Shown one piece after another: positions 4,798 to 32,177 of a stretch of 64,000 nucleotides of DNA. A program made the translations under genes and the position numbers. The notes under the pieces were generated by a model. That model saw nothing but the letters and a program-made list of their open reading frames with translations. It was not told where the DNA came from and did no database searches. The DNA comes from Penicillus capitatus (Eukaryota; Plantae; Chlorophyta), in contig OZ287709.1 in NCBI GenBank assembly GCA_965649825.1, positions 248,001 to 312,000 on the forward strand, in the 5' to 3' direction. How positions within the stretch are numbered: the stretch's first letter is position 1; the number at the start of each line of letters is the position of its first letter.

Positions 4798-6728
4798 ATG
4801 CGACGCGTTCTTCGACGACAACTGATCGAAGGGCCATGGCGGATCTTTTCGGCATCCCTCAGGGAGCGTGTCGTTGAGAGTCCCTTCGCCTTTGAGCGCT
4901 CTACGGGTGCTGCTCCGCGGACCCCACTGTCTGCCATAGGGAAGCGATTGTTCTGGAGCGGAACAAAGCACACTGCCCGTGTATCGAGCAATCCCTCAGC
5001 TCTCGGTTTTCGAAGCACCCGTGTGGCGGATGGCGCTTCGATAGGACGGATACACAACGTGCGTTGGTTGGCGAGAAACCGACCCGTACAACAGGAAGGC
5101 ATATCCCCAATGGCATCCGATCCGTCGGCCGAACCCCCCGCACCGGCAGAAGAGGACAAAAAAGCGAGCTCTTCACTGTCTGAAGCCAAAGACACGACCA
5201 CCCCCTCCCAAACAACTGCCTCTCGCTCTCAGGTCGCCACATTCTCCCCCTCTCCCTTCTGATCACGGCCTTTACTGAGGTAGATTGCGTCTGTGGTGAA
5301 TCACTCGGCTCTGGTCATCACGCGCAACATCGAATGGTATTCTCTTCCGTCTGTTGCCTGTTCGATGTCGTTCTGTGGTATTGAGGGGGACTGTTCTGCT
5401 GGGCTTTGAGCAAGTGCGTCGGTCATTGGTCGGAGAAAAGAGTGAGGAGCGTTTGCTGTGGGAGTTAGGCAAACAAGTATACCGTACTGGACGAAGAGGG
5501 TGAGACAGTGGCACTCATTGCGGAAGATCTCAAGGGATTTGGCGATGCCATTGGACGACAGCTCCTAAAAACGAGACGGAGCTTTACAGCCACAGTCTTC
5601 AGCGCGGACGGTTGAGTCATATAGAGTGCGAGATGCATTGTGTTCCGACACGTGTCCTGCTACAGGTTCCCAAGTGATCTTCCGCATCCGACGGCCGGCT
5701 TACTTGATCAACAGCTCCATGTACGTGGAGAATGGATCGGGTGATGTTCTGGGGGAAATTCAGCAGCGCTGGCATCTGTGGCGGCGGAATTATGATCTCT
5801 ACCTAAACAAGGCACAGTTCGCCCGGATTGAAGGGAATTTTCTTGCCTGGGAGTTTGAGCTCAAAGATGAGAAAGGAGGTATCCATCATCACACTTTTGG
5901 AGGATGTGACTGATGTGTGACATTTCAGGAACGTTGGCATTGATCGATCGAAATTTTCAGGGGTTTGGCAAAGAGATCTTTACCGATGCCGGAAAGTACG
6001 TCATCCATTTTGGCGAGAGTCCGATTCAAGCGGCCGAAACGGCGACGAAGACGCTGAAAGCGCGGACAAATGACCCAAACCTGCGGGCAGTGACACCCAT
6101 GGCGAAGCTGAGGACAGGGGTCAAAGTCATCCCTTCTGTCACAGGAAACCAACTGGTCCTCTCCTGTATCCTTCCGCCCAGGTGCATAGACCCCTCCCTG
6201 TGTCATAGGTCGTGCAGAAACGGTTGGAATTGACTCAGAGAATGATTGCATTGGCGTGCGCCATGACGATTGACTACGATTACTTCTCTCGACATTCCAG
6301 TGCTCTTCGACACTTTATCCCAGTCAATGAAACGTGAGATCTCTCTCTGTGTGATCCAGGTGGAGCTGGTTATCTGGCGCCTCCGATCATTTTGCCACTG
6401 CCCGGTGGAGGAGAAGCCCCGGCCGATGCTCCGGCGGGCGATACAGCGGCAACTGGTGCGGTGGATGTTGTTTCATCAATTGGATCATGATGTGACGGAC
6501 GTGTCTGCAGGAGAGACGTCCACCGGACAAGCGGGCTCAGGCGAAGGAGATACGCTACTAGGTACATCACCATCGACCGTCGGAGAAACACTGGGAAAAT
6601 GTTCTCGGCGTGCAGGAGGAGATGAAGAGGTGTGGACAGCCGATGAGAGCGAAGTGTTGGACAGCGGCGAAGGCGGCGGCGTTCTTGGCGGTCTATTCGA
6701 GAACTTGGACCTCTTTGGAGACTCCTGA
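4798..6728 (+). CDS. Phospholipid scramblase-family protein (AIM25-like), probably mitochondrial, multi-exon
   Basis: Arg/Ser-rich N-terminus. Spliced exons give ALVITRNIEWGTVLLGFEQANKYTVLD, FRIRRP, GEIQQRWHLWRRNYDLY, EIFTDAGKYVIHF and ALACAMTIDYDYFSRHS, followed by a Gly/acidic tail. Confidence 0.85.
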
Positions 6729-7063: not shown

Positions 7064-9253
7064 TTACGCTGTCTGCAGATCTTCTGTGACCAATACGGTC
7101 TCTGCGTGCGCATCCTCTTCTCTCTGCACCTCCTCTTCTTTTGTTTGCCCGTTGCTCTCGAACGGCAAAATGTTGTGCGTCCTGTCAAGCGTGTGACAAA
7201 GAGTGACAAAGAGTGAGATGGCTGACTTCATGTAGGTGAGGAATTGTCCGGGGAATTCGGCTAAGAGTTCCTTGGCGAGTGCCTCGCCGTTGTTTTTGTA
7301 TTTTTCAAATTCGACGAACTGTACGATGTCTCTTTCGGCATAGACCCCGTCTTCGGACAGTAAGACATCGTCCGAATCCAGCTCGACCATCTTCGAAAAA
7401 TCTTCCTTTCCTACGCCGACAAGCATGATCGATAACGGAAGACTCGATGCGGCAATGATCTCGCGTTTCACACGCTAGAGACAGACAGACACACGGAATG
7501 GCGTGCATCATAGGAATCGAGAATGGATCGAGACGCACTGGCATGTCCAGCAAAACGCCATCGGTGATCATCAGCAGACAGTAGTACTTTCGATGCGAAT
7601 CTCTAGCCGCCATCGTCGCCGCCGCCTTAAGTACTGGACTGAAAAATGTCGGTCCGGCCAATGTGACGCGATTCAGTGCATCCCTACCAGATGCGAACGC
7701 ATCAAGGCCGGTCGAGAGAGAGATACGTGCCTGTAAGCATCCAGGACGCCACGGACGCCTTGGCACTCGGGAGCGGCGTCATCGCCGTTGACAGCGAAGC
7801 AATGACTGACGACTTTGTCTTCTCCGGGGAGTTTTGCTCCGAAGCCCCACGTCGGGAAGAGCTGATCGGTGTCGTAGGCCTCCAACACACGTCCGACTCC
7901 AAAAATAGCTTCTTCGTAGACATTCAACCTCCGGTCGCCATCTGTGGTCTCCGTCAATATGTGGTGCAGGGATCCAGGATACTCGGGCAGTCCATTGGAA
8001 CGCGTGAAATCGATGGCGACCAGAAAACAAATCTCAAAACCGGATGCGATGTACTCCAAAAACGAAGGAGAGGGTGTTCTCTCGTATTCTGATGGACACA
8101 CAGAGATGAGTCCGTAGGGAATCCAGTCGATAGGGATCACCTCGGATAAAGAGTTCTCCGACGTTTTGTCCATCTTTTTTCAAAACCGATGACACCGCGG
8201 ATCCTGTTTAGAAGACAGACCTGTCACATCACAGAATCTTTCCACGCTTTACCTTTGGCGGCGCTTTCGATGTCGTTGAGTGAGAGCGTGATTTTGCCGG
8301 CGGGCTGATGCGTGCCTCGGCTTTTGAAGTAGAACAGCTAGAGAGGCACATTTCAGTCGATCGCCGTTTCCACGCGTCTGACCTCGATGAGCAACGGACG
8401 GCTGACATTTGCATTGCACAGAATTCTCAGTCGCGTCTCGAGCGGCTTCCAGATCAATGGCAGATCGCCATCTGACGGCCGCAGGACTTCGGATCGATAA
8501 GCAGGGATCCACGTTTCCCCATCGCCGTGTTGTTTACTGATTCTGTAGAAGACGCCTGATGCTCGACTGCTGCTGAGACGCGCTCCAAGAACGAGTTTCA
8601 CTTCATCGGACTGATTGCTTTGCTCCTCGTAGTAGATCGAAACCTGATGTGACATGCATCTTCCTTGATGTGACAGAAAGAGTGAGAACTTTGCTCTCGC
8701 TCATCGGAGTATTGTTTTCATCAAGCAAAGGCAACGTGCAGTGTCCCTGGGACTCGGTGACGATATCGGCCAACGTAAACGCAGCAGCGCCCAAGAAATC
8801 CTAGCCCATTATGATGTGACACATGAGTGCAATGGATAAAACTGTCGAATCGGCACTTGATCGTCCAGTTTCAGATCTTTGACACTTCGGTCTTCATCGG
8901 CATCGTACAGAACGACCTTCATTTGCTGAAGACGCTCGAATTCGTAGAGCACTTGGAAGGACCGAACAAACTTCGGATCTACAAGACCACGAGCATCTCA
9001 CGCACTCTTTTCTCCACCCCATTCCACTCCGTTACTCAGATTATTGGGTACGACCTCTGTTCGGCCCACTTCTCGCTGGCCGTCGTCCGTGACCGTATAG
9101 AGGACGGCAAATGGGTCAGATAAACTGCACATGGTGTGTAGAGTAGTCATGAAGAGTGATAAGTGTGAGATTTCTATACCTGAGGATATCTTTGTTGACG
9201 AGATTTGTGCAGGCAAAGCTCAACTCGACCTTCACGCGCAGTGTGGGGAACAT
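7064..9253 (-). CDS. Copine (C2-C2-vWA), BONZAI-like, multi-exon
   Basis: KVELSFACTNLVNKDILSKSDP (C2A), SFLEYIASGFEICFLVAIDFTRSNG, FPTWGFGAK, LLMITDG, LPLSIMLVGVG and RDIVQFVEF. The start codon (9253) is uncertain. Confidence 0.92.
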
Positions 9254-9473: not shown

Positions 9474-10639
9474 TCATGCGTTGGCAAAACGCCGTCCCAC
9501 AATTAAGAACCCCGTATGACCCTTGAGTCCCACAATACGTGTATTGGTAACCATGGATAGGGCTCTGTCATCTTCTGTGGGCTCTCCCTCTCCCTTGCCA
9601 CTGTTCTGCATACCTGAAGTGTGATCTGGATGATCTAAATGATCTAGAACTTGCCATACCTGGAGGGATCGATTTCTGAGCGTGGTAGGCGTGGAGATCC
9701 GTAGCCAAGGGCTCGGACTTGACTCGGTATTCCTCTGCAATGCATTCCATGATACGCAGATCGATGATGCATTCAGTCTCCGTCATTGTCTGACATGTTT
9801 TCTGTATCTGTTCGATGCATGGACTGAAACTCACCAGACAGTGACCTGGACGCAAACAGGAGACAGCAGAAGAGACCACCTAGACAGAGACACCCTCACT
9901 CCATACGGCCACCCCTCCAGGCAACGCACGCACTTTCCAAGGCTCCGGTACGTCCAGAAACACGCCATCGACGCGATGCTGTGTGAATGCTTCGGGGAAT
10001 CCATGGGACTGAACGTCGCGTTGTTGGACAGTGACGATGTGCGAGAGACCTGCCAGGACAGGAGATCGATCCACCAGACGCTTCGTGGATGGTCGGATCG
10101 CGCACCGTGACGAACGAACTCGTTTTCGGCCGTGGCGCATCGATCTTGATGAAATTCAAAAGTGTGGACATGACCCGTCGGTGCGACGGCTCTGGCGAGA
10201 GCATGGGTCAGCGAGCCGCTTCCGGTGCCGCTTTCGAGTACCACGCTTCCAGGTTTCAGCTCCAGAAATGTACAGATCAAGGCGATGTCGGCTAAGTACA
10301 GAATCTGCGTCCGATGTGTGAGCACCCGCGTCCACAGTTCAGGTGTGGGGGTCAAGAGACAGAGAGGCTGAAGATTCGGACGTCTCTTGCGCGGATAGAC
10401 CACAGAGCCGAAGATTTTGCCAATCCAGTCCTATCACGCCATCTCCTTCAAAAGTGTGACCACAAAGAGTGACGCACTTGCGTGTGATACGTGCCCGTCG
10501 TGAACTGCACGACGTGATCGGGATCATCGCGCACGTAGACCGCGCGCATGACCTTAGGAGAGACGTAGGCAATGACGAGGACATCGGCTTCGATGCGGCG
10601 CGCCGTCGAGGCTTCGTAGCTTCCGGCCGTCGCCAACAT
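9474..10639 (-). CDS. TRM61: tRNA (adenine58-N1)-methyltransferase catalytic subunit
   Basis: LTHRTQILYLADI, LESGTGSGSLTHALARAVAPTGHVHTFEFH, VDGVFLDVPEPW, SFSPCIEQI and C-terminal GHTGFL. Confidence 0.93.
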
Positions 10640-17047: not shown

Positions 17048-18445
17048 ATGCAGCGGACGCGACGGCCAGGGATGTATGATTTGATTGTGGTCGGAGCTGG
17101 ACTCCATGCACTCACCCTACTCTGTGCTCTCTACGAAGAGCGACCCATGCATACAAACCTTATCGATGCCGCCGGAGGCGTCACGCGCAGCAAACAGAGT
17201 GAGAGGACAATGAGAGCTGAGCTTAAGAGACGGCGAAGAGGGAGAAGGGATGAGAGAGAGGAGAGGGTGTTCGTGGTGGATCGATGGGGTCGATGGTTAG
17301 AGAACTGGAAGCGACAGTTCGACGTGCTCGGCATCGACGCCCTGCGTTCCAACGCTTCGTTGCATCCGGACGCTTTTGATCCAGAGATGCTCTTCGAGTA
17401 TGCTCGTATGCAAGGATATTCGATGGGACAGGCGTTTGAAGAGATCACTCATGTGCCAAGAGGGAAACAGTTCGTCGGTCCATTCCAGGTGCCGAAAACG
17501 GCATTCTTCAATGCGTTCTGTGAATCGCTCATCGAGAGCTTCGGTCTGCGAGACATCGTGCAGCAGGGTGATGTGACATCTCTAGAGGGTGTCACATCAG
17601 AAGGCGGCGCGTGTAAGAAAGGTGTGAGAGTGTGGATGAAGGATGGGACGTCAGTGATGGGACGTCGAGTGGTCGTCTCCATCGGACACTCAAATCGTTC
17701 CAATGTGCCAGACTGGGTCGATCGTGACCTCCGCCTTCCAGCTCAGACACTCGTCCACGTATGGGACTTGGTACATCAAGATCTATCACACTTAGATCTA
17801 AAGAGTGAGAGAGTGGCTGTGGTGGGCGGTGGACTGACAGCAGTGCAGCTGATGCAACTGGCCATGCGTTGCGGCTGTCGTCGTGTGTATCTCATCAGCC
17901 GACGGCCACTAACCGTCCGTCCTTTCGACAGCGACCTGACCTGGAGTGGCCGACTGCGCCATGCAAAGCTTCAGAAGTTCTGGAGTGAAGAAGACATGGA
18001 GAAACGCATGGATCTGATCCGAGAGGCTCGAAGGGGAGGGACCGTCACATCATCTGCCTACAGAACCCTGACGGAAAGGATGGCAGATGAGACGTGTACG
18101 CTCCTAGAGGGTATCGAGATCTGGGATGCGGAATGGAGGGGGTCATCGTTCCACGTGGAGCTCTCCAACCACGAATCTGTTGAGGTCGAGCGCATCTGGT
18201 TGGCAACTGGAAGCGCCATCGATGTGACGCAGGAGCCTCTCTTTGCCAGAATCCTGCAAGATTACCCTGTCCGCGTGTGTCATGGGTATCCGGTGCTGGA
18301 TGCTGATCTCAGATGGCATCCAGATCTGGATGTGTATTTCATGGGAGCCTATGCCAGTCTTGCCCTCGGGCCAGATGGCGTCAATCTTGCCGGGGCGCGA
18401 CGTGGCGCCTTTCGTCTGAGAAAAGAGTTCAGCGACAGGCCCTGA
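17048..18445 (+). CDS. FAD/NAD(P)-binding oxidoreductase (N-hydroxylating monooxygenase-like fold), intronless
   Basis: DLIVVGAGLH (FAD GxG motif), VAVVGGGLTA (NAD(P)H motif), IWLATG and LALGPDGVNLAGAR. The start could be 17048 or 17072. Confidence 0.8.
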   Translation: MQRTRRPGMYDLIVVGAGLHALTLLCALYEERPMHTNLIDAAGGVTRSKQSERTMRAELKRRRRGRRDEREERVFVVDRWGRWLENWKRQFDVLGIDALRSNASLHPDAFDPEMLFEYARMQGYSMGQAFEEITHVPRGKQFVGPFQVPKTAFFNAFCESLIESFGLRDIVQQGDVTSLEGVTSEGGACKKGVRVWMKDGTSVMGRRVVVSIGHSNRSNVPDWVDRDLRLPAQTLVHVWDLVHQDLSHLDLKSERVAVVGGGLTAVQLMQLAMRCGCRRVYLISRRPLTVRPFDSDLTWSGRLRHAKLQKFWSEEDMEKRMDLIREARRGGTVTSSAYRTLTERMADETCTLLEGIEIWDAEWRGSSFHVELSNHESVEVERIWLATGSAIDVTQEPLFARILQDYPVRVCHGYPVLDADLRWHPDLDVYFMGAYASLALGPDGVNLAGARRGAFRLRKEFSDRP

Positions 18446-19695: not shown

Positions 19696-21055
19696 ATGCC
19701 GACCGACGAGAAGGATGAGTCGACCGAGGAGCAGCCGGCCGACGAGGAGGATGAGTTGGCTGAAGAGCAGCCAAGCCGCAGGGAGAGGGTGAGGGTTCCG
19801 TATGGATACTGAACATCGAGTGAGATGCTTAATATTCTTTAGCTGGTCGGTAGCATTGGCAAAACAACGACAGATGCTGTCAAAGGAATCTCGTCTACTG
19901 CCAGTTATTTCGGCGGCGCAATGCTGAAGGGAGCCGACAGATTCATAAGGCGAAACAAAGCTCGCGAAGAGCCAAAAACCGTCGACGATAAGACGAAGAA
20001 ACGGTCGATCATCAACATCTCAAAACCACTCTTCTCGGCACTTGCTTTACCGGCCTTGGAGGAGGACGAACCGACCGAAAAGCAGTCAGCCACCGAAGAG
20101 GATGAGCTGTGCGAGGAGAAGTCGACCCCCGTAGAGGATGAGCTGCCAGATGAGCTGGCCAGCGAGGAGGATGAGCCGACTGAGGAGCAGCCGACCCGCA
20201 CGGATAGGGTGAGATTTCTGCATCGATGTGACCATCGAATGAGATGCTGAGATTCTCTTTCAGCTGGTCGAAGGCATCGAAAAGGCAACGACAGGTGCCG
20301 TCAAAAGAATCTCGACGACTGCCAATTACGTCGGTGACGCAATGATGAGAGGAGCAGAGCGATTCAAGAGGCAAAGCCAAGCATGCGAAGAGCCAAAACC
20401 CATCAGCGAAGGCGCCAAGAGACGGTCGATCATCAACATTTCAGAACGACTGTGTTCGACACGCACTTTGTGGCTGTTCAGTGTGCAGAGGTTAAAGGAA
20501 ACGACAAAGATGGCTTCAGAATTGACGACCCGAGCAGTCAAAACGGTCTCAGTAGTTAGCGCCGCCTCCAGTGTAGCCGTCGACGCTGTCTCTGTCGTTG
20601 CATCCAAGGCAGCAGACACCATCGTCATCGAAGGCATGTCTGATGCATTGCTCAACTCCGAATGCGCAAGTGATTTGGGCAATGCAATGGCTGACATGGC
20701 ACAAAAGAAAAGGAGCGGAGTGACGCGTGTGGCCGCAGCCGTCTACACTTCGGTAGCTAAGATTTCCGAGGGAGTGACAGAGGCAGCAAATACAGTTTCC
20801 AAGAAAACGGCGGATGCAGCCGAAGAAGTCATCACACACAAGTCGCTTCAGTTCAAAAATACTTGAGCGTCACCGAATCCTGTTCCCACTCTTAGGTATG
20901 GCACCGAGGCGTTTCAGGTGGCCAAGGATTGCGTGGAAGCTGTGGGTCATACGACCAACGTCGTCGTCAAAACTTCGACGCTTGGCATGTAAGCCATTGT
21001 GAAACCGAGGTCATTAAAATTGCCATTGGGGGCAAATGATCAAGCCAAAGAATAG
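19696..21055 (+). pseudogene. Senescence/spartin-associated domain gene (ERD7-like) with internal duplication and a late in-frame TAA
   Basis: VITHKYGTEAFQVAKDCVEAVGH matches the senescence-domain C-terminal HKYG motif. The acidic exon, intron and next exon are duplicated. TAA at 20990-20992 interrupts LGM*AIVK. Confidence 0.6.
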
Positions 21056-21215
21056 CAAATTGTGTGACAAATTTGCTATTCTTTAACTAGCGAAAACTGG
21101 AAGGCAGTCTTGTACAGAATCGCTTGAGGTTCAGAGGGCATCGTCATATACGCGCAGACGTCTCTTCGTGTAGAGCTGCGAAGGGAACCATTCTCTCGTC
21201 GAAGATGCGTGACAA

Positions 21216-21836
21216 CTACGCTGTGCTCTTGTCGTTGAGCTCGTCGCATCTTTCGGCGATGTGTTCGAATGCTCGGACAGGATCTGGTGCTTGCCACACA
21301 GCGCCCAAGACGGCAACCTTCGCGAATCCGATCTCGGCCACTTCGGCGAGATTCTGGACAGTGATGCCTCCCAGAGCACACAGTTCGAAAGGAACCGCTG
21401 ACGTCAATCTCTGTAACTCTGCTCTGTCAAAGCCGGCGCTCCGGTAGCCGGCCTTCGAAATACTGTCGAACAGAGGGCTGAGGAAGGCGTAGTCGAGCTC
21501 GCTGCCATAGAGTTGGCTCGCTTCTTGCACGCGTGCGATCGAATGGAAGGACGTCGACTGCAGACATCCCCGCAACACCGGCAGCCTTTGTGGGCGCATC
21601 CTCTCCGTGTAATGCACACCCTTGAGGGAAAAGTCGTGGACGAGGTCGTGGTGTGCGTGGATCATGATCCGACGATGGAAACGTGAGGGAACATCCGCCA
21701 GGTAGCGCCTGTACACTTCTCGCCCCATTCCTGGCTTCCGCAAGTGAAGCGTCTCGAGGCCGCGATCGAACATCTCGCAGAGACGCTCGCACTCGCGCGC
21801 CGCGTTTTCGGGCGGGGAAAGCAGAACGAGTTGCAT
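21216..21836 (-). CDS. Thiamine phosphate synthase/TenI-like protein (Bacteroidota-type), intronless
   Basis: GLETLHLRKP, RIMIHAHHDL, LKGVHY, STSFHS, DYAFLSPLFDSISKAGY and ALGGIT motifs. Confidence 0.85.
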   Translation of the reverse strand: MQLVLLSPPENAARECERLCEMFDRGLETLHLRKPGMGREVYRRYLADVPSRFHRRIMIHAHHDLVHDFSLKGVHYTERMRPQRLPVLRGCLQSTSFHSIARVQEASQLYGSELDYAFLSPLFDSISKAGYRSAGFDRAELQRLTSAVPFELCALGGITVQNLAEVAEIGFAKVAVLGAVWQAPDPVRAFEHIAERCDELNDKSTA

Positions 21837-21860
21837 GGAAGGCGAGAGACAAACGTCACA

Positions 21861-23641
21861 TCATGCGGCAGGCGACGACCGAGCCTTCTCGAATCCCCTC
21901 TTGGCCAACAGAGCCACGCCGTACGAAGCCTCTCCTGCACCAGGGGGAACAAGACTCGAGTGCGTGGACACGGACCGAGAGACAGACCGAAGGGAGCGGC
22001 TTCGACAGGCACGCCCAGAGATCGCCTGCGCATCTCCGTCCACTTCAGATTCGCCGCTCCGCCTCCGGCCGTCCACACCCGTCTGACCGCCCCTGCCCCG
22101 AGCGTCTGCAGCCGACGATAGCACTCAGCTTCGATGGACGCCATTCCTTCCAGCATGCCTGCACCGATGTCGATCAGCGCAGCACCCACTCGATGACCTG
22201 CCTGCCTTGGAGAAAGAGAGCGTCGTCTGCCGGGCGTGGTTCGAGACGCGGTTGGTACAGCGGATCGTTGAACGGGAATCTCTCTCCTGGCGACGCGAGC
22301 GGATAGTAGTTCAACTGCGACGGCGCTTCGTGCTGCATCCTGTCGGTGAGTGTGCGGATCTCCTCGTCCGTAAAGTACTGCCTCAGCACAGCCCCTCCCG
22401 TGTTCGACGCTCCGCCCACCAGCCACATGTCGCCCAGTCGATGCGAGTAGACGCCGTGCTCGACGGCATCAACGCGTTTGCTGCTCAGCATCTTGATGGC
22501 GAGCGTCGATCCCAGGCTGGTGACAGCCTCTCCCTCTTCCTGCGCGCCGGATGCCAGAAATGCGGCGATGCTGTCCGTGGTTCCGGCGCAGACGACACAG
22601 TCGGTGTGCAGACAGTACTTCTGCCGAACCGCGTCCCGAACGCGTCCCGCGACCGTGCCCGGTGGCACGATCGCCGAAGGCAGAAGCGGAAAGAACTCCT
22701 AGCTCCGCAGGAGAATGCGTCAGAAGGAGAAGTCGTTGCAAAACGGTGTGCGACCTGAGACTGAAGCCAGGACGGGTATGCCGCTGTCTCCGGATCGTAT
22801 CCCAGTTTCAACGCGTTGGTGTCGTCCGACTGGCGGCAGTTTCCTGCTCGAAACCCGTCGTCGAAACCGGCAAGGCGCGCAGAGGGAGAGAGACACCGTG
22901 CATGAGATAGGACAGCCAGTCTGCTTGATGCATCACTCTGGGACGCCTTCCCCGTTCTCGATGCCGCTGCCAGGTGTTGTCCAGGTGCCACTGGAGCACC
23001 TTGCACAGCGTCGAGGTGGAGGCCCTTCCCGGATGGCGCTCTGGTGCAATGGCCTGTCTCGAATGCGGGACCAGTTCAAGTCAACACGCGTCGACTTGTC
23101 CGGTACCCTGGCGCGGTCGACCGCCGCTGAGCTCTGTGATGCGTTGTACCATTGAGGCGGCTCCAGAGACTCTCCTGTCCCCTCGTCGACAAGCATGGTG
23201 GTAGAGGATGTCCCGTCAAAGGCCAACGACACAATCCGCGTCGTCAGCTCTTCCGGTATGCGTCCGAACAGCTCATCCAATGCCCTGCAGTCAATTTCGC
23301 GCACGCGACATGCACTATCCTGGTCGCGGAATCGCGCATACCGCTGCCATGCAACATCCCACTCTTCCTCCGGTCGACGGTCGTACGGCACTCTCCCTTC
23401 GTGCAAGGCAGACGAACTCCCTGAGTCGCAGGCTCTTCACATCAACAGTCCGTCGACGATCGGACAGGTTCTTGCCGTCGATCACCGTCGCCCTCGCTCC
23501 GGACGTGCCGAAATCGATTCCCAGGTAGACCGGTCCTTCGACGTACGCCGCCATCGCGTCTCCCATCCGCGGGACGCGTGCAGGGCCTCTCCTCCTCGTC
23601 GAACTCTGGGGAAAGGCACGCGGCTGCAGGAGGATCGCCAT
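21861..23641 (-). CDS. FGGY carbohydrate kinase, XK-1/D-ribulose kinase type, with transit-peptide-like N-terminus
   Basis: YLGIDFGTSGAR, AFDGTSST, QADWL, AGTTDSIAAFLASG, VTSLGSTLAIK, GGASNTGGAVL, AGGGAAN and EASYGVALL. The start (23641) is tentative. Confidence 0.9.
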
Positions 23642-23704
23642 CCGCCAGATGAGCAGAACAATAATCGCCTCATTCCCGTCGAGATTTCCCTGCGGCACTT
23701 TTCC

Positions 23705-25465
23705 ATGCGCGCACGCAGCGGACGTCGCGAATCCTGGTCCAAAAGGGGCGTCGGCGTCGCCATCTGTTCGTTCGTCACGCTCTCCTTCTTTCTATCGTGG
23801 TGGGAGCTCTCCTACCGCGATACCGTTTCCCGCGGAGGGCGTTGGCGTCCAAATATCCAAATCAATGTCGTCGACAAGGACGGTATCGTCCTGCGCGGCG
23901 GCGCGGGATTTCAGGGCGCCTCGCGACACGGCAATCTTGCCGGACGGAGCCCGAGGAGAGGCGTCGTGGACGAGGAAGACGTACCAGTCTCAGACGGGGG
24001 AATCCGGGAGACGCCTCCCGATGCGCCCTATCGTCTGATCCAGCTGCCGAAGGCAGTCAATGCAGCCGCCGCTGCGTGCGAAGAGCAGCCAGCGGATTGC
24101 CGACGGTTCAACGACTTCGTCCAGAGCATGATTCAGGGAGCCACATCGGAAGACCGAGCCCGCCTGTACATCGTTCCGGTCGATCCTCTGGCCATGATCC
24201 GCGAGGTGAATCCCAATCTCTACGCGAAACTCCTGCGGACGCTGATCGACGAGCTCAACTCCTCGAGGCCGTACATCCGATTCAAAGGATCCGACCACGT
24301 CTTCGTGTGCCTGGCGGCGGCTTGCCAATCGTTCGGGGAGGAACTTGCCGAGAAGCTGGCAGACGATCGCGGAACGAGGGCAATCTTCGCGGGCGTCGAT
24401 CTCGACGTCGAGCGTCTGACGTGGCCGTGTCCGCTCAGAACGCTGAACATCGATCGGCAAGCGGTCCGGGATCTCGGTTCCCTGCCCGGAAAGATCACGA
24501 GAGAGGCTGCTTTCATGATCGACCGCCACAACCGCTGGGTGTGCGCGGACGAGTTCCACGCCGCCAACCACTTCGGCAGCTACGAGTCCTCGATGGACGT
24601 CGGCGGCATCTACATGGACGAGTGAGTGGGACGTTCGCAGGGTGGGAGGGCGGAGCGAGCAGAGTGCGTGCGGATGCTGTTTAGGTACCAGTTCACGATG
24701 TGCCTCAATCCCAAGAGCGGCAGCACGATGATGATGTTTCTGCTCAGAAGAATGAAGCACAGGAAGGACTGGAGGTCGAGAAAGAACGGCCTTCCCCACA
24801 ATCCTGAGCTTTCCGGACTGGACTACGTGTCGAGCATCAAGAGGAAGGACCCCAATGTCGTCAAGGCAGTGCTCTCTGAACCGGACGGCGTCGCGTCTGA
24901 GACGACTGTTGTCTAGGCGATCTACGACAGTCCCTTCATTCTGAAGGCCGTTCTGGTGCGTCACCCGATCCCGCGTCTGCTCTCGGCCTACCTCGACAAG
25001 ATCGAGGTGCTGAAGGAGTACAACAGAGTGGAGGGCTTGGAGGCATACGTGAAGGCGCGCGGAGTGCCGTCCTTCGCGGAGTTCGTCGAGTACCTCATCA
25101 CCACCTTTCCCGATCCAGACGTTCTGGAGGAGCACTTCCAGATCCAGTCCGCCAGGTGCGGAGCACGCTACCACAGGTTCGACTTCGTGGGACATCTCAG
25201 CGATGTCGGCACGGAGTTCAAGGAGTTCGCACAGTCCTTGAAGTTCTACGACGAGTACGTTGCGACCGGATGGGGAGAGGACGAGAAACAGCAGTTCGGT
25301 GTGCGCTCCTACCAAGTGGACCAACGCTACGCAGGAATGCAGATCTGGAAGTACTACACGGACGAGCTGATGACGAAAGTCTACCGGTACTACAAAGAGG
25401 ATTTCGATCGATTCGGATTCACCCTGGACGAGATTCTGGTCACGAAACCGTCGACACGTCATTGA
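23705..25465 (+). CDS. Type II membrane protein: exostosin(GT47)-like segment fused to a carbohydrate sulfotransferase (Sulfotransfer_2)
   Basis: N-terminal TM GVGVAICSFVTLSFFLSWW; ARLYIVP...PYIRFKGSDHVFV (GT47-like); CLNPKSGST (5'-PSB), VRHPIPRLLSAY (3'-PB), HFQIQ, FDFVGHL and YYKEDFDRFGF. Introns about 24623-24683 and 24867-24916. Confidence 0.85.
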
Positions 25466-31880: not shown

Positions 31881-32177
31881 GTCACATCATGAGTTTAAAT
31901 AGTGATACGTACACGACTGTTGTAGCACTTACTTCAGACGATAACATCTTTCTAAGACGAACACGACGAACACGTTTTCTATTTGCGGACGTTTAACAAA
32001 GTCGAAAAGTGTTAAAGGAAGAATAATAATCCGTCGGTCCTAGATTCACCAATACCCTAATTGTAACCGTTATTGATTTTCCAATTGTCCATTCTGGCTG
32101 CCTCTGCTAGAATCAGGCAGACATCTTTGTCATTAGCCTGACATCATTGAATGGCGCGAAGTGCATGGATCGATGTT

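Follow-up and report, generated by a model that had tools for sequence, protein, structure and literature searches.

A D-ribulokinase gene and an in-frame TenI-like open reading frame 24 nucleotides apart in the green alga Penicillus capitatus: a candidate bicistronic locus

The two genes described here lie head to tail on the minus strand of a 64,000-nucleotide (nt) stretch of Penicillus capitatus DNA (assembly GCA_965649825.1, contig OZ287709.1, positions 248,001 to 312,000), which we call the window and whose own numbering is used throughout. The upstream open reading frame (ORF1) encodes a sugar kinase of the FGGY family and the downstream one (ORF2) encodes a ThiE-like protein. On the minus strand the kinase ends with ...TCG TCG CCT GCC GCA TGA (stop codon 21863-21861), a spacer of 24 nt follows at 21860-21837 (TGT GAC GTT TGT CTC TCG CCT TCC), and ORF2 opens with ATG at 21836-21834 and continues with CAA CTC. 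From TGA 21863 to ATG 21836 the distance is 27 nt, so that both ORFs share one frame, for which the chance expectation is 1/3. Eight sense codons and no further stop lie between the kinase TGA and the ThiE-like ATG. The spacer is mostly pyrimidine-rich, lacks both AG dinucleotides and an ATG, and is in frame with both ORFs. A copy of the 9-mer TGATGTGAC lies over the kinase stop codon (21855..21863, minus strand). This arrangement of TGA, eight sense codons and ATG on one strand and in one frame had been described in an earlier reading of the DNA (hereafter the sequence-only reading), and our re-reading of the letters agrees with it.

The 24-nt gap is exceptional for this locus, where the other gaps are about 350-450 nt. 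ORF2 is separated by about 350 nt from a convergent gene that ends at 20866, and on the other side the kinase is flanked by a divergent sulfotransferase gene and then an MFS transporter gene (plus strand, ~23.9-26.3 kb), with about 400-450 nt between these two. The sequence-only reading had also argued that the spacer holds no separate poly(A) site and promoter, and the spacer length on which that argument was built is confirmed. Because 24 nt cannot hold a 3' untranslated region (UTR) and a poly(A) site, the kinase mRNA has to run into ORF2. A motif search found no TGTAA on the minus strand in or just past the locus, so that this signal marks no 3' end there, and an Rfam scan of 20500-24500 gave no match and no thiamin pyrophosphate (TPP) riboswitch.

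ORF1 (21861..23641, minus strand) was modelled as a D-ribulokinase gene of the FGGY family, AtXK-1/SePSK type, with eight exons and a product of 462 amino acids (aa). In the rebuilt model, exons 1-4 are at 23641-23466, 23392-23342, 23284-23107 and 23053-22897, and exons 5-8 at 22843-22755, 22698-22206, 22158-21988 and 21934-21861. The seven introns measure 47-73 nt; six are GT-AG and one, intron 6 (22159..22205, minus strand), is GC-AG, which was the sole in-frame solution in the window and in L001, one of three copies of the locus from a relative that are described below. Intron 1 has only tentative boundaries; relative to the homologs, about 6 residues are missing from the model at this point. 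D-ribulokinases from green algae, plants and cyanobacteria can be aligned with the product from end to end, and LLAKRGFEKARSSPAA (...ARSSPAA), its C-terminus, stops at the same point as theirs. Matches to solved structures were strong for both Arabidopsis XK-1 (PDB 5HTR; E=9e-122, query residues 38-454) and Synechococcus SePSK (PDB 5HTN; E=1e-104), and the score for the Pfam FGGY_C domain, 39 bits, exceeds the cut-off of 27. Green-algal D-ribulokinases are 51-60% identical to the ORF1 product (57% in Bryopsis, 56-57% in Scenedesmus, Tetradesmus and Chromochloris, and 60% in one EukProt model), and the top UniRef names are D-ribulose kinase. These matches point to a green-algal host, and a small edge in identity hints at an ulvophyte. 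AtXK-1 and SePSK have both been characterised as D-ribulose kinases (PMC4880283); ORF1 shares full-length alignment with them and is a predicted member of their class. No member of this family among those compared carries a ThiE-like partner or extension, unlike the gene in the window.

The kinase begins with an in-frame extension of 29 codons that is rich in Arg, Ser and Pro (MAILLQPRAFPQSSTRRRGPARVPRMGDA; 23555..23641, minus strand). The extension lies upstream of the structure-aligned residues and is conserved in L001, which bears out the choice of ATG 23641 as the start codon in the sequence-only reading. It may act as a short plastid transit peptide. ORF1 has a length of 1389 nt, and the 1302 nt downstream of 23554 contain 16 ATGs compared with 15.3 +/- 3.5 in shuffles; two additional in-frame ATGs lie upstream of 23554. 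Base composition in the kinase region is elevated, with a G+C content of 62% at 22001-24000 as opposed to about 50% window-wide, and the coding frames there have GC1 of ~0.65, GC2 of ~0.45 and GC3 of ~0.70-0.76.

ORF2 (21216..21836, minus strand) encodes 206 aa without an intron, begins with the peptide MQLVLLSPPENAAR and ends with TAG at 21218-21216. Its product belongs to the TMP-TENI superfamily, where it falls in the 3CEU/TenI-like branch. The Pfam TMP-TENI model (PF02581) matched residues 11-180 with 51.5 bits and E=1e-13 (gathering threshold 27). Scores against the more specific models were far under their cut-offs, with 40.8 bits for the ThiE equivalog TIGR00693 (cut-off 145.1) and 39.5 bits for the TenI equivalog NF005819 (cut-off 251); the best NCBIfam match was to the C-terminal domain of a Nudix-TMP-TENI fusion family. 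The closest solved structure is PDB 3CEU, presumably the BT0647 product, which aligns over residues 1-186 with E=1e-27 and with residue 1 against residue 1. The ThiE and TenI proteins of B. subtilis align to ORF2 over its C-terminal half only. In a neighbour-joining tree without bootstrap, ORF2 groups with chlorophyte orthologs from Monoraphidium, Raphidocelis, Scenedesmus and Apatococcus. Recent transfer from bacteria was considered and rejected on the basis of this grouping and of a GC3 like that of the kinase.

The resemblance to 3CEU is accompanied by a gene neighbourhood in bacteria. A Hymenobacter homolog of ORF2 adjoins thiS-thiC-thiD-thiE-thiG-thiH and is distinct from the ThiE of the same operon, and the thi operon of B. 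thetaiotaomicron reads thiSEGCHF-tenI (PMC5613172). The top structure match and the Hymenobacter homolog beside thi genes connect ORF2 with the 3CEU-type "second ThiE" or TenI of Bacteroidetes; it differs from TenI of the Bacteroidetes thi operons in scoring far under the NCBIfam ThiE and TenI cut-offs. ORF2 is probably a TenI-like "second ThiE" paralog, a type whose role in bacteria is probably thiamine-related. The protein probably binds thiazole phosphate or another phospho-ligand, and activity as a thiamin phosphate synthase is unlikely. In green algae, thiazole is made via THI4. The sequence-only reading had called a thiamine link between the two genes conceivable but speculative, because some FGGY kinases act on deoxy-xylulose. 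That link now looks weak: it stays speculative because the kinase is of the D-ribulokinase type, and ORF2 falls under the ThiE and TenI cut-offs.

A search of about 5.8 billion proteins returned a sole close relative of ORF2 (P0002, 85% identity), which comes from ENA assembly ERZ26696514. That assembly contains three copies (L001, L006 and L007) of the whole MFS-sulfotransferase-kinase-ThiE-like locus, with about 99% mutual identity and 82% DNA identity to the window. The copies are on contigs ctg291042 and ctg303746, and two of them are inverted and about 25 kb apart on one 814-kb contig. They represent either a recent segmental duplication or haplotypes. All three read ...GCC GCG CGA CGT GAC TGA CGC TTG TCT CGC TCT CCT TCC ATG across the junction. 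The codon aligned with the kinase stop of the window is CGA, the relative's kinase is three codons longer and uses another TGA as its stop, and a 21-nt in-frame spacer of seven sense codons follows. At the site aligned with TGATGTGAC the relative has CGACGTGAC, so that the motif overlapping the stop codon in the sequence-only reading is confirmed for the window and is missing from the relative's junction. Within the motif the relative has CGACG and the window TGATG. Because both differences are CpG to TpG changes, the relative's state is probably ancestral, and the stop codon of the window and its TGATGTGAC copy would be derived.

Downstream of the full gene by about 2 kb, the relative also contains partial duplicates that comprise the spacer and ORF2 codons 1-66 and are 95% identical to the original. 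In L001 the duplicate spans 8316-8538 (223 nt) and its 5' homology boundary lies 1 nt before the kinase stop; in L007 it runs from about 7317 and includes a 76-aa ORF at 7341-7571. No such partial fragment of spacer and ORF2 was found in the window.

Both coding sequences are maintained. Between the window and the relative, ORF2 has a dS of 0.65 and a dN/dS of 0.13, kinase exon 6 compared with L001 has a dS of 0.43 and a dN/dS of 0.09, and the indels among the copies are multiples of three. These values argue that both ORFs are under purifying selection and that both genes must be functional, and hence expressed. For ORF2 in particular, purifying selection on both ORFs together with in-frame-only indels implies that it must be expressed. 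ORF2 might otherwise be taken for an unexpressed relic, a dead retrocopy in the 3' UTR of the kinase, since it is intronless and promoterless, is placed where a 3' UTR is expected, and has truncated copies in the relative. A dN/dS of 0.13 at a dS of 0.65 across 206 codons, and an ATG and full-length frame that are intact in the window and in 3/3 relative copies with in-frame indels only, make a relic highly improbable.

We favour, tentatively and with a probability of roughly 0.45, a structurally bicistronic mRNA that yields two separate proteins, with ORF2 expressed at low level. Transcription would start at the kinase promoter, in the short divergent region that is shared with the sulfotransferase gene upstream of 23641, and the transcript would run through the eight-exon kinase and the intronless ThiE-like ORF to end downstream of 21216. 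Ribosomes would translate the kinase and terminate at the UGA. The ThiE-like protein would then be synthesised separately and at low level, from the AUG of ORF2 after the 24-nt spacer. The likeliest route to ORF2 would be post-termination reinitiation over the very short spacer and not leaky scanning, which is implausible because ORF1 is 1389 nt long, has at least 16 AUGs and is not depleted in AUGs. We infer the single transcript, the route of translation and the low output of ORF2 from several observations. The window and the relative each have two complete, colinear ORFs with a stop codon between them (spacers of 24 and 21 nt), and the 24 nt between stop and start in the window contain neither an AG nor another ATG. 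The head-to-tail layout with a 21-nt spacer is found in 3/3 relative copies despite a dS of 0.43-0.65, and the tight junction has been kept, on this comparison, through substantial neutral divergence. The kinase has a normal C-terminus, and the first residue of ORF2 coincides with the beginning of its domain. Finally, ORF2 has no intron as compared with seven kinase introns in 1.4 kb, and the Monoraphidium and Raphidocelis orthologs have one intron.

Green algae provide precedents for such a transcript. Hundreds of exclusively polycistronic nuclear mRNAs have been documented in them (PMC7896298), and the sequence-only reading had counted polycistronic transcripts there as established. The loci of Chlamydomonas reinhardtii, Chromochloris zofingiensis and Auxenochlorella protothecoides (PMC7896298, PMC11291117) are the natural comparison class. 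Like the pair in P. capitatus, they have tightly spaced, colinear ORFs on one strand of a green-algal genome with a stop codon in between and no room for a separate promoter and poly(A) site, and the pairs are kept in related species. In chlorophytes the median distances between the ORFs are 40-260 nt, with overlap of stop and start codons in some cases (PMC7896298, PMC11291117), and the spacer reported here is among the very shortest known. In Chlamydomonas, a synthetic spacer of 6-10 nt after a long ORF1 gave usable ORF2 product, according to the work of Onishi and Pringle cited in PMC11291117. The present locus differs from this class in its long ORF1 without AUG depletion and in that this gene pair is unlinked in the other chlorophytes examined.

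Several points weigh against the bicistronic interpretation. Reinitiation after long ORFs is generally inefficient. ORF1, with its 1389 nt and at least 16 AUGs, shows no AUG depletion relative to the 15.3 found in shuffles, and the AUG of ORF2 has U at −3 and C at +4, a weak context. In the algal loci documented so far ORF1 is short, with medians of 291-600 nt, and leaky scanning is the mechanism that has been demonstrated (PMC7896298, PMC11291117). Termination-reinitiation on closely spaced ORFs is known, for example from Sherlock et al. 2023 as cited in PMC11291117. The junction in P. capitatus shares with those systems the very short distance from stop to start and an ORF2 AUG that is the first after the stop. 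It differs from them in two respects: inspection of the last ~75 nt of the kinase sequence revealed no TURBS-like UGGGA motif of the 18S-complementary type, and reinitiation after 462 codons would be inefficient. The wider distribution of the two genes is also unfavourable. The ThiE-like genes of Monoraphidium and Raphidocelis are solitary, each with one intron and a divergent upstream neighbour, and in these two and in Apatococcus lobatus the kinase is on another contig than the ThiE-like gene. In Bryopsis the kinase is followed by a convergent protein-kinase gene, and no ThiE-like sequence was found within 8 kb. A pattern search for junction-spanning DNA in JGI metagenome contigs gave no match. 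On this evidence the pairing of the kinase with the ThiE-like gene is not older than the lineage of the window and its relative. In the comparison with other algae that had been suggested in the sequence-only reading, the layout is kept in one relative and the genes are unlinked in the other algae examined, with no fusion protein found. Lastly, the TGATGTGAC copy, the pyrimidine-rich spacer and the boundary of the relative's duplication fit a transcription start at the junction.

Such a start is a serious rival, albeit one that we consider somewhat unlikely. The ThiE-like gene would have its own transcription start at the junction or in the last kinase exons or introns, and the transcripts would overlap: a monocistronic ORF2 mRNA with a leader of about 20-25 nt would be the source of the ORF2 protein, and the kinase mRNA would merely overlap it. 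This arrangement would sidestep the translational problem posed by a long, AUG-rich ORF1. A TGATGTGAC copy sits exactly on the junction, and no other 9-mer in the window is as over-represented as this motif, which occurs 17 times where 1.03 copies are expected. Sites 1-9 are at 6488, 8223, 8645, 8666, 8812, 11566, 13894, 15985 and 17569, and sites 10-17 at 17591, 18044, 21855, 31881, 40251, 40442, 58225 and 58380; both strands are represented in the set of 17. The motif is often extended to ATGATGTGACAGG and has no shared flanks and no extended repeat context. Its copies are often paired, 21-22 nt or about 150-190 nt apart, and those at 31881 and 40251 adjoin TATTTAAA boxes, as might be seen for a promoter element or transcription-factor site. 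TGATGTGAC may be an element of this kind. A role as a gene-end signal was rejected, since its TGA triplets close long ORFs no more often than other TGAs. Two further features favour a junction start. The spacer is a conserved pyrimidine-rich patch that resembles the sequence just upstream of the kinase ATG, and the relative's 223-nt partial duplicates begin 1 nt before the kinase stop, as would a copy made from the 5' end of a transcript. The boundary would fit a unit with its 5' end at the junction and is not firmly explained. On the other hand, TGATGTGAC is missing at the relative's junction, where CGACGTGAC is found instead, and the motif also occurs inside the copine gene of the window in both orientations. 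Inspection of the sequence near the junction revealed no TATA-like element, and the kinase mRNA would still be obliged to run into ORF2.

The shared reading frame raises a different possibility, programmed readthrough of the UGA, by which a fraction of ribosomes would make a kinase-linker-ThiE-like fusion. Functional stop-codon readthrough, which appends a C-terminal extension or domain, generates peroxisomal isoforms of LDHB and MDH1, and viral examples use UGA-CGG and UGA-CUA contexts. The P. capitatus junction resembles these systems in having an in-frame ORF after a UGA and a possible targeting rationale: ORF2 and its chlorophyte orthologs are without a targeting extension of their own, and a fusion could bring the ThiE-like domain into the plastid behind the N-terminal extension of the kinase. 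Moreover, a net indel of 6 nt has left the ORFs of both lineages in frame, both lineages use UGA, the two ORFs of the window are kept apart by nothing more than a single UGA, for which the relative has CGA, and the stop context in the relative is UGA-C. Other points speak against readthrough. The prior for a shared frame is 1/3, the two lineages are not independent tests, and the frames of polycistronic ORFs are random in other green algae (PMC7896298). The stop context is not conserved (UGA is followed by UGU in the window and by CGC in the relative), and the stop codon has shifted and yet been retained in both lineages. The spacer peptides appear poorly conserved (CDVCLSPS and RLSRSPS), and the spacer DNA, whose alignment is ambiguous between one 6-nt indel and indels of 4 nt and 2 nt, is conserved no more than neutral sites. 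Folding of the RNA downstream of the stop revealed neither a stable structure nor one common to both lineages (z = +0.6 and +0.9).

Natural fusions of the two domains were equally lacking among the matches inspected. The 120 best matches to a query of kinase, spacer and ThiE-like protein included no FGGY+TMP-TENI fusion and consisted of stand-alone kinases only (357-582 aa, without PF02581). None was present among the 120 best matches to the ThiE-like protein either, which are proteins of about 190-240 aa apart from one exceptional 354-aa model with PF04725 beside PF02581. The junction thus differs from functional readthrough systems in its unconserved context, the lack of a stimulatory structure, the retained stop codon and the absence of natural fusions from these searches. 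The fusion by readthrough put forward in the sequence-only reading has gained no specific support from the stop context, RNA structure, spacer peptide or fusion searches, and we regard it as improbable.

A more elaborate version would make the in-frame UGA a regulated switch. Most ribosomes may terminate there to give a plastid-targeted D-ribulokinase, a minority may read through to give a plastid kinase-TenI-like fusion, and reinitiation may give a free TenI-like protein in the cytosol, so that one mRNA would have three products in two compartments. Either such a switch or efficient reinitiation after a 462-codon ORF without a known element of the viral type is, in our estimation, a long shot. 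A true fusion mRNA could also arise if splicing removed the kinase stop. The introns of this gene are very short (47-73 nt) with weak consensus sites, one of them is GC-AG, and GT dinucleotides are present just upstream of the stop. However, no AG occurs from the stop to codon 15 of ORF2, and candidate introns that reach the first three AGs are 85-106 nt long, all with a remainder of 1 on division by three, such that none restores the frame. Any such intron would also cost the TMP-TENI domain its first conserved strand, and we consider removal of the stop by splicing scarcely credible.

Some further features of the window were recorded. In the gap between ORF2 and the convergent gene, a perfect 15-bp inverted repeat (AAAGAATAGCAAATT / AATTTGCTATTCTTT) with an 8-nt loop is found at 21047-21084, and the stretch around it does not align with the relative. 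Two tandem paralogous ORFs at 19921-20250 and 20342-20866 (plus strand) start with M(L/M)(K/R)GA(D/E)RF..RRSIINIS, and the second has a weak match to the Pfam Senescence domain (23 bits; cut-off 24.6). Elsewhere in the window are recognisable genes for a scramblase on the plus strand (5626-6233) and, on the minus strand, for a copine (from about 7064 to 8655 or beyond) and for a GCD14/TRM61 tRNA methyltransferase (9831-10403).

If the bicistronic interpretation is right, the kinase/ThiE-like pair adds a new, atypical member to the polycistronic loci already known from green algae. A single mRNA that serves both genes would be a natural counter-example to the rule that green-algal bicistrons have a short, AUG-poor ORF1 and depend on leaky scanning. 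It would offer a compact system for testing reinitiation or readthrough behind a long algal ORF, with practical value for the design of two-gene expression cassettes. Should ORF2 instead have its own start at the junction, the locus would be an extreme case of overlapping transcription units, and TGATGTGAC would be the more interesting lead. Efficient reinitiation after a 462-codon ORF without an element of the viral type would, if true, be a mode of translation undescribed for algal cellular genes. One shared mRNA would, in addition, tie a plastid D-ribulokinase that is poorly understood to an uncharacterised family of TenI-like proteins that chlorophytes and Bacteroidetes have in common.

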